Shown one piece after another: positions 8,111-39,358 of a stretch of DNA of 64,000 nt; the stretch's first letter is position 1, and each line of letters begins with the position of its first letter. The DNA is taken from positions 62,001 to 126,000 of IMG/VR virus record IMGVR_UViG_3300038441_001119. One strand, given 5' to 3'. The position numbers were made by a program, and so were the translations under genes. The notes under the pieces are model-generated. The model was not told the origin of the DNA. It ran no database searches and saw nothing but the letters and a program-made list of their open reading frames with translations.

Positions 8111-8523
8111 TTTCACACACGCACAGTGGGAGTTAACCCGAAGATGCAGTTGCGCAGGTTCTAGCAGGCGACGACGTAACATTGACGGCCCCGACCTAAG
8201 AACTTGTCCTATCAATTTTTTCGACACAAGTTCAGCGACATCGCCCTCCCCTCACGGAACGACAATAGCGCCTACCTGCTGGCCGGATAGTTAGCGATCC
8301 ATTTTAACCTGTGGATACAGGAAGGCTGTACTTGGAACCCATTTGCGCAAAGGTTCCAAGTAGTCGTCAGCGCATACGTAGTAATGCCGTCTGTTCGTAC
8401 ACCACTGCAGTGTCGGAACTATACACGATATTAGAGCCATTGACCCGGGTTCATCGGTATTGGGCGGAGGTGCCGAGCGGGATGCTGGGCGGAAAGGAAA
8501 GTGACGACACACCTTCCTGGCTC
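8111..8523 (-). ncRNA. candidate large structured ncRNA
   Basis: no convincing ORF; begins at the promoter motif; nested helices (GAGCCA/TGGCTC, TACTTGGAACC/GGTTCCAAGTA, GAACTTGT/ACAAGTTC, CAGGTT/AACCTG, AGCAGG/CCTGCT, CAGTGG/CCACTG). Confidence 0.5.
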
Positions 8524-8556
8524 ATTAATATATAGCACCGCAGTGCTTATATTTGC
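8521..8556 (-). promoter_or_regulatory. bipartite promoter motif, copy 1
   Basis: GCAA-N14-GTGCTATATA-TTAA-TGAG. Confidence 0.7.
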
Positions 8557-8572
8557 TTGGTGTGTATTAGGT

Positions 8573-8616
8573 AAAAAGAAGTACCCACGTCCCCTTGCGG
8601 GGACGAAGGTACTTCT
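8573..8616 (-). terminator. intrinsic terminator
   Basis: AGAAGTACC..CGTCCCC/GGGGACG..GGTACTTCT hairpin + U tract. Confidence 0.7.
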
Positions 8617-8645
8617 CTCCATGGATGTTGACTGATACCCGGAAA

Positions 8646-8855
8646 TTAACGGCGGTCGTAGTTGCGAGGAGGCAGTTCAGCCTCGTGGCGGACGGCGTCG
8701 ACGAATTCGCGTTCTTTCTTCTCGCGATATTCCTCACGGCGTTCACGTTCGCGGTCGACGACTTTCTCTTCCTCCGTACGTGGGTCGCACGAGCTGAGGG
8801 CGAGGGCAGTGGAAGCAGCTGCAACGAGCAGCATGATATGTTTGTTCAGTTTCAT
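8646..8855 (-). CDS. small lipoprotein
   Basis: signal peptide with lipobox LSSC, charged tail. Confidence 0.7.
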   Translation of the reverse strand: MKLNKHIMLLVAAASTALALSSCDPRTEEEKVVDRERERREEYREKKEREFVDAVRHEAELPPRNYDRR

Positions 8856-8923
8856 CTGGTTTGGTGGGGTTGTTGGTTAACTATAGCACGGAAAGCTTGG
8901 GTGGAGTTTCACCACCCTCTTGG

Positions 8924-9115
8924 TCAGGGGAAATCACCGTCGCCTCCACAGGAGGGACATTTGAAGTTACCCTTCCATCCGGTCCCGTTACAGGACTGGC
9001 ATTTGAACGCCGTATCGTGGCGGTGAGACGGATCCTGTTTTGGCTCAGGACTTACCGTTAGGGCGGCGGCTACCGACAGTGCGGCAACCGCGAACAATGC
9101 GATGTATCGTTTCAT
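8924..9115 (-). CDS. small exported or membrane-anchored DnaJ-type zinc finger protein
   Basis: MKRYIALFAVAALSVAAA then CQSCNGTG..CPSCGGDG. Confidence 0.65.
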   Translation of the reverse strand: MKRYIALFAVAALSVAAALTVSPEPKQDPSHRHDTAFKCQSCNGTGWKGNFKCPSCGGDGDFP

Positions 9116-9123
9116 AGGAAAGA

Positions 9124-9199
9124 TGGCGCGGAGAGATGGAATCGAACCACCGACTGGCGCAGTTTTCACCACGCAGCTCTACCACTGAGCTACCTCCGC
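9124..9199 (-). tRNA. atypical tRNA, Phe(GAA)-like, with 8-nt anticodon loop GTGAAAAC
   Basis: GCGGAGG/TCTCCGC acceptor, GCTC-AGTGGTA-GAGC, GCGTG-GTGAAAAC-TGCGC, TTCGATT, GCCA. Confidence 0.8.
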
Positions 9200-9213
9200 G
9201 TTCTCTGGGAAAA

Positions 9214-9291
9214 TGGTACGAGGAGATGGATTTGAACCACCGACCCCCAGCGCCAAAATGCTGGTGCTCTACCGGACTGAGCTATCCTCGA
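9214..9291 (-). tRNA. atypical tRNA of undetermined identity with 8-nt anticodon loop ATTTTGGC
   Basis: TCGAGGA/TCCTCGT acceptor (U1:U72 mismatch), CCAGC-ATTTTGGC-GCTGG, TTCAAAT, ACCA. Confidence 0.8.
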
Positions 9292-9395
9292 ATTTTGGTA
9301 CCCGCTGTTCCAGCAACGGGTACCATGGTTGGTTTACCGTAAACAAATAGGTCACGAATGACCAGCAGACAATCCCTTGCGGGAAAGTGGGAGAA

Positions 9396-36784: not shown

Positions 36785-36839
36785 TTAAAAAGGATTAACC
36801 AATGGGCGTAGACACATTGTTGTGACATATATGTTTACG

Positions 36840-36874
36840 CTCATTAGTATATAACACAAATACGCTTTTTTTGC
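36840..36874 (-). promoter_or_regulatory. bipartite promoter motif, copy 6
   Basis: GCAA-N13-GTGTTATATA-CTAA-TGAG + GCGTAAACA/TGTCTACGC hairpin. Confidence 0.65.
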
Positions 36875-36882
36875 CTATTTGC

Positions 36883-37335
36883 TTATGGTTGGATTACGCG
36901 TGCTTTTGGACCGTAAACTCGTTCGATGTATTTGACACCGTCACGAGCAAGGTCGCGGTTGGTAATGATCAGATGACCATCTTCACCAATGGCAACCGCT
37001 TTGCGTTTCTTGAGTGCTTCGCGGGCACGTGCGGTTTCACGAGGAGAGTTCGAGTGCTTGAGGATAAGCTCATCAGGCGTGGTCGGATCTTCAATGGTTT
37101 CAGCTGCGTAAACTTCGAGGGCAACTTCGTGAACCTTTGCAGCTTTAGCGGCATCTTCCTGCGAGGGAGCTTCCAGTTGCTTAGCTGCTTCTGCTTGTAC
37201 CTGATCTAGCAGAGCTTGGATTTCGATATCTTCCTGAATACGCGCAGTAGCTTCTGCAATGATATCAAGTTCTGTAACCTTCTCAGCCTTTGGCTTTCGG
37301 GTACGCTTTTTCTTAGGGGTGCTGTCTTCGGACAT
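36883..37335 (-). CDS. hypothetical protein
   Basis: start MSEDS. Confidence 0.7.
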   Translation of the reverse strand: MSEDSTPKKKRTRKPKAEKVTELDIIAEATARIQEDIEIQALLDQVQAEAAKQLEAPSQEDAAKAAKVHEVALEVYAAETIEDPTTPDELILKHSNSPRETARAREALKKRKAVAIGEDGHLIITNRDLARDGVKYIERVYGPKARVIQP

Positions 37336-37366
37336 AGGCCGTGTATCGTTTATTTTTGGAAATGTG

Positions 37367-37846
37367 TCAACTATGTTTTTTACGCTTAGTGTCAGAGATT
37401 CCAAAAATCTCTTGTCCTATAACCATGAAGGCAGCCGGATCTTGAGGTTCCCCCACGAAATAGTGTGGGAGTTTCTTGGCTGATTTCCAGAACTCTGCGT
37501 AGTCCTCGTCGTCGATCTTAACGCTATGCGACTCAGCTTGTTTGTTACCCTGAGCGTCGATGATCTTGCTTGCCCTGATCTGCGGGTACTGCATACGTAC
37601 AGTTTCACTCTGACGCCATTTTTGCCAAATGCTGAACGCAAGCGGACCGGCATGGGACTCATTGTCCGCGTACACAAAAACACCATCGTATCCTTGCTCA
37701 GACGCAGACTCGTCAACGGGAAGTCGAACGTAGAATGGCAGCATTGCTCGTTCTACGGTAGTGCCTCCGCCTTTCATCCTAAACCTCGCCAGCTTACGTT
37801 TACACGCAGTGGCAGTCATTCCTTTAATCTCAATATTACCGGGCAT
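37367..37846 (-). CDS. hypothetical protein
   Basis: start MPGNI. Confidence 0.7.
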   Translation of the reverse strand: MPGNIEIKGMTATACKRKLARFRMKGGGTTVERAMLPFYVRLPVDESASEQGYDGVFVYADNESHAGPLAFSIWQKWRQSETVRMQYPQIRASKIIDAQGNKQAESHSVKIDDEDYAEFWKSAKKLPHYFVGEPQDPAAFMVIGQEIFGISDTKRKKHS

Positions 37847-37847
37847 A

Positions 37848-38816
37848 TTAGTCTTCCTTTTCTTTGTCGAAATAGTCCTCATCCTCATCATCGTCCACGT
37901 CGTTATCGCGGTCTTTCAGGATGGTGTCGATGATGCTGCTTCCAAAGTCTTCGTCATCATCATCCTCATCGTCTTCATCAAGTCCACCTCCTTGGACCAT
38001 AGCTTGGAACAATCCGAATGAGGCACGTTCGTCGTCTTCATCCTCATCAAAGTCCTGCGGTTGGGCAGCAGCAGCGTCCGTACGTGGGACAAAGTCCTGT
38101 GCAATGAAGTAAGATTCGAGCTTCTGGTCGGACAGAGCTGAGTTAAGCAGGACGTTTACGATATCCACAGGAATACCGTCTCCGTACTTGTGGTCCGCGT
38201 CTTCGTAAATCAGGCGGTCAAAGTCGAGAGTAAGCTTGGTGCCTTTAGGGAGCTTACCGTACTTACGCTGAAGAGTGACTTTCGTAGGGGTTCCTTGGTA
38301 GAAGTCAATCCGACCAGACGGTAGTAGGCTGATTCCACTGTTGTCGCCTTCATCACGCGAAAGGAAAGTCATGGACTGCACAATGGGTACGACTTCCTTG
38401 TTAAGGGTATCGAAAAGCAGTATAAAATAAAGTTTGGCGAGTTGTTTGGAAGCACAGCCCTTGACCAACACTCCATTGGCGGCAAGTTGCTCTTCTTCAA
38501 TGAACTCTTCCCCTTCTGGGATCAGTTCCGCAGATCCGTGGATGGTGAGACATCCCGGGGTAATGGAGATGTTATGCATGATGGTCTTGACGATCTCAAG
38601 ACGTGAGGTTTTCTTTCGTTCTAGGAAAGTCGCGATAGCCTCATTGGCGTAAAGATCAGGCAGTTCCTTTTCGACGATGGCTCTGAGAATATCGTTCTCA
38701 GGAAGTCCTTGATCGTCAATGGCAACTAAAAAAGAACTCAACGCTGGGACCAGTTCCGCGAGCTGTCGCATCGCGGGGTCTAGGAAGAGTTTGGAGGCAG
38801 GGTCGTTGCGTTTCAT
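37848..38816 (-). CDS. hypothetical protein with long acidic tail
   Basis: 322 aa, poly-D/E C-terminus. Confidence 0.75.
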   Translation of the reverse strand: MKRNDPASKLFLDPAMRQLAELVPALSSFLVAIDDQGLPENDILRAIVEKELPDLYANEAIATFLERKKTSRLEIVKTIMHNISITPGCLTIHGSAELIPEGEEFIEEEQLAANGVLVKGCASKQLAKLYFILLFDTLNKEVVPIVQSMTFLSRDEGDNSGISLLPSGRIDFYQGTPTKVTLQRKYGKLPKGTKLTLDFDRLIYEDADHKYGDGIPVDIVNVLLNSALSDQKLESYFIAQDFVPRTDAAAAQPQDFDEDEDDERASFGLFQAMVQGGGLDEDDEDDDDEDFGSSIIDTILKDRDNDVDDDEDEDYFDKEKED

Positions 38817-38862
38817 TTGCGTCGACCCTACCTCCTAGTCATTCTTTGTCAAAGGAAAAGTT

Positions 38863-39192
38863 TCAGATTCCTGCGAATTCTGTAATCTGATCCAGACGTT
38901 CCGTATCCCGCTCAGTGAGACCGACAATCGCGGTCCCTTTAAGCAGTCTGATAGGAATAGTTTCACGAACACCTTTCACTTCCACCACCAGCGTCGTACT
39001 ACCGACGAGAGTTGCTGGAAGGTCCGGAATGACCGCGTCAATTGGCGCGTCACCCGACATAATCTTCAACTTGCCATCCACCACTCGATACTCCGGTGAA
39101 GGAGCGGCTGACGAGGGAGGCGGCTGGGGCTTTTGTGGTTCTGCGTCCACGTGGAGCTTACCACCAACGATTTTATGGGATGGAGTCTTCAT
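38863..39192 (-). CDS. hypothetical protein
   Basis: 109 aa, internal (I/V)V(G/D)GKL repeat. Confidence 0.65.
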   Translation of the reverse strand: MKTPSHKIVGGKLHVDAEPQKPQPPPSSAAPSPEYRVVDGKLKIMSGDAPIDAVIPDLPATLVGSTTLVVEVKGVRETIPIRLLKGTAIVGLTERDTERLDQITEFAGI

Positions 39193-39322
39193 ACTGGCTT
39201 GGCTGTGTGTAACTTATATTGTTGCAAGTACTTGCGAGACCTGCTTTGCGTGCAACATACCGGGACTGATAATGAATGCCTTAGGGATATTAAAATATTC
39301 CCCTGCAGTAGTCTTGCAAGTA

Positions 39323-39358
39323 TTCACTATTATATAGCCCAGACATCATCGAAGTTGC
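39323..39358 (-). promoter_or_regulatory. bipartite promoter motif, copy 7
   Basis: GCAA-N14-GGGCTATATA-ATAG-TGAA, overlapping the end of 39330..39965. Confidence 0.55.

Follow-up and report, generated by a model that had tools for sequence, protein, structure and literature searches.

We analyzed a 64,000-nt stretch of phage DNA, hereafter the window (positions 62001-126000 of IMGVR_UViG_3300038441_001119, a 212,352-bp virus record), on whose minus strand a bipartite, promoter-like motif recurs at gene boundaries. Coordinates refer to the window unless they are marked as genome positions, which count along the whole record. The record was found in soil metagenome runs, and the phage occurs in DNA sequencing runs from soil and groundwater. 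The phage genome has a G+C content of 49.6%, and its minus strand carries approximately 228 of the 235 crudely called genes. The portion from 13 to 101 kb of the genome is rich in ORFans and also contains tRNAs, a tmRNA, an NAPRTase, AAA ATPases and some of the genes of a multisubunit RNA polymerase (RNAP); the portion from 103 to 212 kb encodes the portal, helicases, DNA polymerase A, DnaB, TerL, a sigma factor and the major capsid protein (MCP). Megablast returned no nucleotide-level relative among cultured phages. The search of viral contigs with the beta protein of the RNAP returned no related locus, and neither did a search of bacterial species genomes with a beta alignment as the query, which hence gave no clue to the host.

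Identification of a strand-specific bipartite motif

The pattern GCAA-N14-GBGYTATRTA-N4-TG has six exact matches on the minus strand of the window (Table 1), compared with an expectation of 0.00 and a maximum of 0 in 100 dinucleotide-preserving shuffles. A seventh copy, at 36842-36874 on the same strand, matches when the spacer is shortened to N13. When the upstream box was relaxed, the core G-N-G-Y-TATATA-N4-TG was found 19 times in the genome, always on the coding strand and never on the other strand. The family consensus is G(-22)CAA-N14-G-N-G-Y-TATATA-N4-TG. With the 19 copies aligned on the hexamer, the positions G-22, G-4, G-2, T0, A1, T2, T4, A5, T10 and G11 are invariant, and the G at -22 is followed by C in 15 copies, A in 17 and A in 16. 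The hexamer is TATATA in 18 of the 19 copies and TATGTA in one, such that its last base is always A; T precedes the invariant G at -2 in 13 copies. The family is concentrated in one part of the genome, with 17 copies between 13 and 101 kb and only two between 103 and 212 kb.

An earlier note on this DNA had listed seven minus-strand copies at gene boundaries. All seven are present as six exact matches and the N13 variant, and all lie at gene boundaries; their start coordinates had been placed 2 nt too low and were otherwise right. This set of seven is real but belongs to the larger family of 19. The N13 spacing read for the seventh copy does match as a pattern, yet the alignment places this copy in the common N14 register with GGCA instead of GCAA, because the G at -22 is invariant across the family.

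The copies are intergenic and co-oriented with the genes. The first downstream open reading frame (ORF) starts 36-60 nt past the invariant G in four of the window copies (for copy 5, at 28676, 36 nt past the G) and 133-222 nt past it in two, and copy 1 is followed after 11 nt by a short ORF with a GTG start. The first ORF downstream of copy 3 starts at the ATG at 12596, and copy 2 lies 5' of a small ORF, a tmRNA (9396-9856) and two tRNAs. Upstream, a terminator-like hairpin with a T-run lies just 5' of copy 1 (8601-8584), the GCAA box of copy 5 comes directly after a strong GC hairpin, and several copies come after clear intrinsic terminators (e.g., genome 13099, 16388, 17450, 29677, 70534 and 137392). 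These upstream terminators are described case by case, since the statistic on upstream hairpins was uninformative (background of 54%). Together, an intrinsic terminator and the copy that follows it appear to form a compact terminator-promoter cassette.

Conservation of the motif in uncultivated relatives

An exact-pattern scan of IMG/VR yielded 22 single matches, five of which lie on contigs encoding proteins 25-53% identical to those of the phage. In these five partial genomes of distant relatives the core was found 31 times, on the coding strand only, and the reversed-pattern control returned 0 matches. The copies of these relatives were retrieved with a pattern that fixed TATATA and left out the upstream box. 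The upstream box nevertheless reappears at the same distance, with G in 26 and A in 28 of 30 copies, and is lengthened to GCAATA. The T at -3 is found in 29 of the 30 copies. Seven further copies were found in closer relatives, whose beta proteins are 66-73% identical. The copy located right after the beta stop codon is kept in the same position in L098 and L100, and L104 keeps the position after beta as the variant TCAA-N14-GTGTTATATT-N4-TG.

Hairpins at the invariant TG

In six of the seven window copies, a predicted hairpin begins at the T or the G of the invariant TG; the hairpin of copy 7 begins 7 nt later. The earlier note had most copies followed at once by a hairpin starting from the G, which is accurate for these six once the T is allowed as a first base but not for copy 7. 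Perfect stems of 5 bp or more were found to begin within 0-3 nt of the TG in 14 of the 19 copies of the phage and in 19 of the 30 copies of the distant relatives, compared with 29.7% of random TG sites under the same criterion (binomial p ~1e-4 for each set). When the 42 nt from the invariant T were folded, the minimum free energy (MFE) structure contained a stem-loop beginning at the T or the G in most copies. The mean fold energy was -8.9 versus -6.9 kcal/mol (p = 0.005), and these energies are modest: the stems are short, at 5-9 bp and -6 to -16 kcal/mol.

The earlier note proposed that transcripts start at the G and are protected by the stem-loop, both of which would be plausible. The T of the invariant TG is predicted to be base-paired in 11 of the 19 copies, which suggests that the 5' end of the transcript could be at this T or just before it. 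The stem sequences vary from copy to copy, which points to a positional structure of the RNA (or of single-stranded DNA) rather than to a common protein operator. Stem-loops at the 5' end are known to stabilize transcripts in the 5' untranslated region of E. coli ompA, in Bacillus phage SP82 and in ermC. The candidate structures described here resemble these stabilizers in lying at, or a few nucleotides from, the presumed 5' end and in having a fixed position and a variable sequence. They differ in that the stems are short and in that the 5' end and any stabilizing effect are presumptive here.

A split RNA polymerase and a sigma70-family protein

Among the genes of the phage are a single sigma70-family gene, whose product comprises regions 2-4, and those of an RNAP whose beta and beta' subunits are split (Table 1). 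The RNAP is divided among at least four or five genes that are spread across more than 110 kb. The C-terminal part of beta is 32% identical to part of gp206 of Salmonella phage Arash, a virion protein. Homologues of beta number 626 proteins at E <= 1e-20. As for the intein of beta'-C, many beta homologues of relatives also carry LAGLIDADG or intein insertions. We detected no RNAP paralogue with the family hidden Markov models at E values up to 10, which returned one beta-C and one beta'-N. No second RNAP set or sigma paralogue was found in the genome, and the Pfam model of sigma region 4 gave only a chance-level match elsewhere. The single-subunit RNAP profile PF00940 had no match in the phage, but the control genomes were equally silent, so this search was uninformative.

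The sigma factor was recognized by four comparisons. Phmmer against PDB retrieved RpoD/SigA (best E of 1e-6), and a profile built from 23 sequences of the sigma family aligned with residues 412-599 of E. coli RpoD, which span regions 2.3 to 4.2 (E ~5e-9). The AlphaFold2 model has a mean predicted local distance difference test score of 83.8 and was matched by Foldseek to SigA, sigmaS, SigB and sigma32 in holoenzyme structures (E ~1e-6). PHROGs labels the protein 'RNA polymerase sigma factor' (E = 1.3e-10) and names none of the neighbors of its gene; blastp revealed no synteny between this region and the gp4-gp17 block of Arash. The protein is divergent: in the alignment of the family profile to RpoD, the equivalents of E. 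coli sigma70 W433/W434 and H455/E458 are not conserved. A prediction of the complex of sigma with beta'-N lends weak support to their pairing, with a score of 0.48 against 0.00 for the best of three controls. The predicted interface joins sigma residues 40-82 to beta' residues 99-142, where region 2 would be expected to contact the clamp helices. Of 80 solved complexes, 58 passed the mark used for such predictions, as did 2 of 110 mismatched pairs; passing at a score of 0.60 or less were only 7 of the 80 solved complexes but both of the passing mismatches. Overall, the presence of one sigma70-family protein alongside a beta/beta' RNAP in pieces supports the proposal of the earlier note that the motif is a promoter of the phage RNAP or of a phage sigma factor.

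Table 1. Motif copies, predicted stem-loops and transcription genes of the phage (window positions unless marked as genome)
Feature	Position	Strand	Details
Motif copy 1	8523..8556	-	GCAA 8556-8553, GTGC 8538-8535, TATATA 8534-8529, TG 8524-8523; exact match
Motif copy 2	10288..10321	-	GCAA-N14-GTGTTATGTA-N4-TG; exact match
Motif copy 3	12635..12668	-	GCAA-N14-GTGTTATATA-N4-TG; exact match
Motif copy 4	19599..19632	-	Exact match; directly follows the stop codon of the gene for the C-terminal part of RNAP beta
Motif copy 5	28712..28745	-	GCAA-N14-GCGCTATATA-N4-TG; exact match
Motif copy 6	36842..36875	-	The 'N13' copy; in the common register GGCA-N14-GTGTTATATA-N4-TG
Motif copy 7	39325..39358	-	GCAA-N14-GGGCTATATA-N4-TG; overlaps the last codons of ORF 39330-39965
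Stem-loop of copy 1	8486..8524	-	MFE -12.9 kcal/mol; stem from T of TG
Stem-loop of copy 2	10268..10289	-	MFE -8.3 kcal/mol; 7-bp stem from T of TG
Stem-loop of copy 3	12615..12636	-	MFE -5.8 kcal/mol; stem from T of TG
Stem-loop of copy 4	19581..19600	-	TGAGAGA-ATAATA-TCTCTCA; MFE -8.9 kcal/mol
Stem-loop of copy 5	28692..28712	-	MFE -8.4 kcal/mol; stem from G of TG
Stem-loop of copy 6	36803..36843	-	MFE -13.1 kcal/mol; from T of TG
Stem-loop of copy 7	39304..39318	-	Weak; 7 nt past TG, first helix of 4 bp; least convincing of the seven
RNAP beta, C-terminal part	19642..21561	-	639 aa; Pfam RNA_pol_Rpb2_6, E = 1.3e-54; only copy in the genome
RNAP beta, probable N-terminal pieces	53374-54147 and 54147-55595	-	blastp to the N-terminal part of Arash gp206, E = 1e-16 and 1e-18
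RNAP beta'-N	genome 60624-61844		Identified by Pfam/homology
RNAP beta'-C	genome 4721-8197	-	Broken by an intein with Hint and LAGLIDADG domains
Sigma70-family protein	genome 172535-173311 (outside the window)		258 aa; identified by sequence, profile and fold

Comparison with known promoter classes

The core TG-n-TATATA has the format of an extended -10 element, with the TG exactly one base before the hexamer. The second element can be read as GCAA, which occupies -22 to -19 and leaves an 18-bp spacer, or as the longer GCAATA, for which the spacer is 16 bp; its sequence is not TTGACA. Judged by this arrangement, the layout of the motif is that of a sigma70-family promoter. As in extended -10 promoters of sigma70, a TG-n-TATA hexamer is preceded by a box approximately two helical turns upstream and followed by a likely start 6-7 nt past the hexamer. 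In contrast to these promoters, the motif has GCAA and not TTGACA, the last base of the hexamer is A and not the critical T, the spacing is rigid in all 19 copies, and there are two further invariant features, a TG at the putative start site and a G located two bases 5' of the extended -10 TG. When assessed as a sigma70 -10 hexamer, T-12 and A-11 are present and the T at -7 is missing; a generic scan for TTGACA/TATAAT, which needs a T at the sixth position, flags none of the copies. The earlier note had set the motif apart from TTGACA-17-TATAAT: the GCAA box at -35 and the A at -7 are indeed atypical, yet the core follows the exact extended -10 format at a sigma70-family spacing. The invariant A at the equivalent of -7 together with GCAA at -35 leaves the motif with a poor fit to each primary-sigma consensus that we compared.

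Promoters of the primary sigma factor of Bacteroidota have TTTG at -33 and TAnnTTTG at -7, with nearly invariant T-8 and T-7 (PMC6847099). For sigma-ABfr, the standard consists of nearly invariant T-12, A-11, T-8, T-7, T-6 and G-5, with no G at -10 or -9 (PMC6847099). Compared with this -7 element, the motif has T-8 in approximately 5 and T-7 in 12 of its 19 copies, and five copies have G at -10 or -9. The pattern TTTG-N19-21-TAnnTTTG has 0 matches on the coding strand of the genome, where the conserved upstream box is GCAA. Generic Bacteroidota promoters were also considered and rejected as a class in this genome: TAnnTTTG alone is enriched neither on the coding strand nor between genes, and the genome lacks the bipartite host consensus. 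Similarities with Bacteroidota promoters are that the motif of the AT-rich relatives contains TA-nn-TTTG, as do 5 of the 19 copies of the phage, and that these phages, like Bacteroidota, lack Shine-Dalgarno (SD) sequences. The differences are that T-8 and T-7 are not conserved here, that there is no TTTG at -33, that GNGYTATA falls outside their consensus, and that their expected start, 4-5 nt past TTTG, would fall within the 5' arm of the hairpin.

Bacteroidota lack SD sequences (PMC6847099). In the phage, SD sequences are essentially absent genome-wide (33 of 234 genes, which is not above the within-gene control), and they are likewise absent in all four relatives that we measured. We had entertained an argument from different host phyla within the family, based on one relative with a strong SD after a motif copy, but this argument was dropped given the absence of SD in the phage and these four relatives. 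The leaders are rich in C and A, and the word TTAACCAAC recurs 10-25 nt 5' of start codons in six gaps (e.g., 10240-10265 and 28680-28700).

The phage also shares features with jumbo phages of the phiKZ/AR9 type. Their early promoters are read by the virion RNAP and have conserved AT-rich elements near -10 with a conserved transcription start site 6 nt downstream, as in the AR9 early promoter AAATATATATTAT-N6-G+1, and their late promoters are undetectable by bioinformatics (PMC5312081, PMC7598289). Jumbo phages of this type that encode RNAPs have no sigma homologues, and jumbo phages that encode sigma factors have no RNAPs (PMC7824862, PMC13282480). Here, GYTATATA is present, the invariant G is the sixth base after it, and the copies are concentrated in the ORFan-rich region. 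The two systems have in common a conspicuous AT-rich element near -10 with a G approximately 6 nt further on, a position before units of putatively early type, a multisubunit RNAP encoded by the phage, and no comparable motif detectable for the remaining genes. They differ in that phages of the phiKZ/AR9 type have two RNAP sets, no sigma factor and no -35-like box, whereas here a single RNAP set is combined with a true sigma70-family protein and a promoter-like motif of two parts. Promoters of the T7 type are contiguous over ~23 bp, in contrast to the bipartite motif.

An analogous motif in cultured phages

Among cultured phages, those closest in their beta protein are Salmonella phage Arash and Vibrio phage D69, with 32% identity. 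Homologues common to the phage and Arash comprise TerL, the portal, MCP, RNAP and sigma. The best Arash match of the phage sigma factor is gp10 (E = 2e-12), and gp196 reaches only E = 3e-4. In the mass spectrometry of Arash virions, no protein detected was more abundant than the RNAP beta protein gp206; the particles also contained beta' gp216 and sigma gp10, and the authors propose a role in early transcription (PMC10585845).

The core TGnTATATA is missing from the genomes of Arash and D69. K-mer enrichment instead revealed TGKTATAAG-N5-TGTA, with 18 copies in Arash (OQ632216.1) and 16 copies in D69 (OZ195729.1), all of them on the reverse strand and 0 on the forward strand. As a control, the reversed pattern matched 0-1 times per strand. 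In the parts of the two annotations that we examined, small ORFs and tRNAs are grouped in blocks on the reverse strand, and most structural genes as well as the RNAP genes are on the forward strand. The equivalent of -7 is again not T, being G in 11 of 14 aligned copies. Both motifs combine TG-n-TATAnn, a short spacer and an invariant TG(TA) with a non-T at the -7 equivalent, and both are strand-specific and located 5' of small ORFs and tRNAs in phages that share homologues of RNAP, sigma, portal, MCP and TerL. The motif of Arash and D69 differs in having TATAAG and not TATATA, a spacer to the TG that is one base longer, and no conserved GCAA box. The hosts also differ, since Arash and D69 infect Proteobacteria that use SD sequences, which can also be seen in the leaders of Arash. 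The occurrence of a like format in SD-using Proteobacteria phages and in an SD-less family suggests that the format tracks a phage lineage with RNAP and sigma across host phyla; this argument is drawn from Arash and D69 only. We found no published description of TGKTATAAG-N5-TGTA in Arash or D69 and no published promoter for the family of the phage, and the Arash paper makes no mention of promoters.

Search for additional motifs and other features of the genome

De novo expectation-maximization (EM) returned as its top intergenic motif the tail of the terminators (a GC stem, then TTTTTTTTAT). Intrinsic terminators with such a tail (a GC stem, then TTtTtTTTAT or CTTTTTTACC) were observed in approximately half of the intergenic gaps (e.g., 23478-23510, 17717-17748 and 13401-13433 on the minus strand). 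Searches for a second promoter class recovered only this tail by de novo EM and no motif by k-mer enrichment after masking. Words of the form GTATAAT were rejected as a promoter, being partly TAA/ATG stop-start overlaps. The words TGTAATAG and ATACAAG located 5' of sigma and beta'-N have too few copies to be called a promoter class. On the coding strand, TGTAATAG has two copies only, at genome 173345 (before sigma) and 61879 (before beta'-N), both of them intergenic and ~35 nt before the start codon; in both cases (A/G)ATACAAG comes next, ~10 nt ahead of the start codon, and a similar ATACAAG precedes the operon of a 619-aa protein and beta (23441). With so few copies, these words may represent a control element that the transcription genes have in common. 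A canonical sigma70 consensus promoter was encountered only once, as a perfect TTGACA-N17-TATAAT after a T-run in a 613-nt gap at genome 53763.

Several other features were noted. The portal (45188-47038, minus strand), MCP (genome 192780-193772) and TerL (genome 151351-153501, plus strand) were identified solely by distant homology to Arash, with 20-27% identity; TerL is one of the few plus-strand genes. The tmRNA downstream of copy 2 is full-length and on the minus strand (Rfam RF00023, 103 bits, model positions 1-374), and was not called by ARAGORN. Its tag frame ends in ...GNDNIVSFRGRNASKEVVALAA*, and two tRNAs adjoin it (9127-9199 and 9217-9291). This tag may resemble the cyanobacterial ANNIV.F.R tags, which would be a tentative clue to the host. 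Rfam detected three tRNA genes on the minus strand with 44-53 bits (3697-3775, 9124-9199 and 9214-9291), which ARAGORN reported as tRNA-??? with the four-letter anticodons ccta, gaaa and tttg; these tRNAs may have unusual anticodon loops or small insertions. A match to the abiF RNA family lies at 41710-41746 on the minus strand (38.8 bits versus a gathering threshold of 37 bits, E = 0.0016). Finally, the family A DNA polymerase (genome 130975-134322, minus strand, 1115 aa) combines N-terminal uracil-DNA-glycosylase-superfamily and 3'-5' exonuclease domains in one protein.

A candidate phage-dependent promoter class and its alternatives

The identity of the motif as a promoter is well supported, if indirectly, by its co-orientation with genes, its intergenic location, the upstream terminators, its conservation in relatives and the strand bias of its counterpart in Arash and D69. 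We lean slightly towards the view that it represents a promoter class that depends on the phage sigma factor, most probably together with the phage's own polymerase and possibly with delivery in the virion, that drives early or non-structural units from a start at or next to the invariant TG, and whose transcripts open with a stem-loop. The sigma70-family protein would read the GCAA(TA) box, the extended -10 element and TATATA, and would act with the split beta/beta' RNAP; by analogy with Arash, both could be brought in with the virion. Transcription would most likely start at the invariant TG 5-6 nt downstream, with a pyrimidine at -1 and G at +1, and the conservation of TG at a fixed distance in all lineages fits such a start. 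The units driven would be ORFans, the tmRNA/tRNA cluster, metabolic genes and some polymerase subunit genes, and the stem-loop at the start of the transcript would shield its 5' end from 5'-end-dependent decay.

Alternatively, the host RNAP with its primary sigma factor may read the motif as a set of strong early promoters, as in T4 and T7, with the phage RNAP and sigma taking over middle and late transcription from other, unrecognized promoters. We consider this scenario rather unlikely, and several observations nevertheless speak for it or weigh against dependence on the phage enzymes. Primary sigma factors read promoters that are bipartite and have an extended -10 TG, conserved and atypical -35 boxes are also found in the early promoters of T4, and the sigma gene of the phage sits in a motif-free region. 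The beta operon lies downstream of a motif copy in the phage, and in the relatives G002 and G003 the motif is located directly 5' of an RNAP subunit gene (the homologue of 54147-55595), an arrangement that would fit equally well a logic in which the host polymerase acts first. Indeed, a polymerase that transcribes its own genes must be present beforehand, such that virion delivery would be needed, and this is known only for Arash, whose beta is 32% identical. The consensus of the AT-rich relatives, TATA-TAaaTTTG, contains a perfect Bacteroidota-type TAnnTTTG (PMC6847099) with the TT rightly placed in 20 of 30 copies, so that a host sigma factor could contribute if the hosts are Bacteroidota. 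The scarcity of SD sequences would be consistent with a host among Bacteroidota or Cyanobacteria. Cyanobacterial SigA reads E. coli-like -10 boxes. Moreover, the loss of the W433/W434 and H455/E458 equivalents makes the specificity of the phage sigma factor unreadable from its sequence, the predicted docking, which weakly suggests a pairing of sigma with beta', could echo a memory of solved holoenzymes, and none of the public RNA runs queried with positions 8000-12800 matched. What speaks against the host sigma factor is the -7 equivalent, which is an invariant A (G in Arash and D69). To our knowledge, the primary sigma factors of all well-studied phyla require a T at this position, and the consensus scan flags no copy. 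The TAnnTTTG element fails at T-8 and T-7 in the phage, and G at -10 or -9 is virtually absent from host promoters (PMC6847099). The conserved hairpins would have a start site of the host type within their 5' arm, at least 10 invariant positions exceed what host promoters need, and the format is shared by SD-using Proteobacteria phages and an SD-less family, and so follows the phage lineage and not the host phylum.

It is somewhat less probable still that the phage sigma factor reads the motif but recruits the host core, as is thought for SPO1 gp28 and for jumbo phages with sigma but no RNAP, and that the phage polymerase uses other promoters without sigma. This would explain the RNAP subunit genes downstream of the motif, it agrees with the bacterial-type regions 2-4 of the sigma factor, and reviews describe phage sigma homologues as partners of the host core (PMC7824862, PMC13282480). 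Sigma and RNAP are, however, both found in Arash virions (PMC10585845), the predicted docking on the clamp-helix region of the phage beta' weakly favors the phage core, and a sigma factor made late, from a gene in the motif-free region, could act early only if it were injected. We regard it as very improbable that the motif is not a promoter but a signal of RNA processing or stability that acts with the hairpin, or a DNA site bound by a regulator. The hairpins do adjoin the motif, but their sequences differ, which leaves no common operator, and two boxes approximately two helical turns apart with a fixed, non-conserved spacer are typical of protein-DNA recognition; the core has the exact TGn-hexamer format, and the copies come after terminators and 36-222 nt ahead of the start codons of downstream ORFs.

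Beyond the preferred reading of a promoter class dependent on the phage sigma factor, we tentatively raise a broader possibility, which we find plausible but do not expect as strongly. A complete phage-encoded holoenzyme of the bacterial type (split beta/beta' and a true sigma70-family sigma), delivered in the virion and reading its own promoter of sigma70 format with a non-T at the -7 equivalent (GCAA-N14-GTGYTATATA-N4-TG here and TGKTATAAG-N5-TGTA in Arash and D69), might constitute a third transcription strategy of large phages. This strategy would be conserved from phages of Proteobacteria to a large uncultivated family of soil and freshwater, and would make early transcription free of the host polymerase without recourse to sigma-less RNAPs like those of phiKZ/AR9-type phages. 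Reviews divide large phages into those with a multisubunit RNAP and no sigma factor and those with a sigma factor and no RNAP (PMC7824862, PMC13282480); this family, Arash and D69 have both. If the host polymerase reads the motif, it would be merely a strong and unusually conserved early promoter of modest interest. As it stands, the motif gives the sigma and RNAP machinery a concrete candidate promoter with defined -35, extended -10, -10 and start positions. If our interpretation is true, it would define the specificity of a divergent sigma factor that accepts a non-T at -7, provide a handle for annotating the early regions of hundreds of uncultivated phage genomes of ~200 kb, and offer orthogonal promoter, sigma and polymerase parts. 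It would also bear on how viruses acquired and split bacterial-type holoenzymes.

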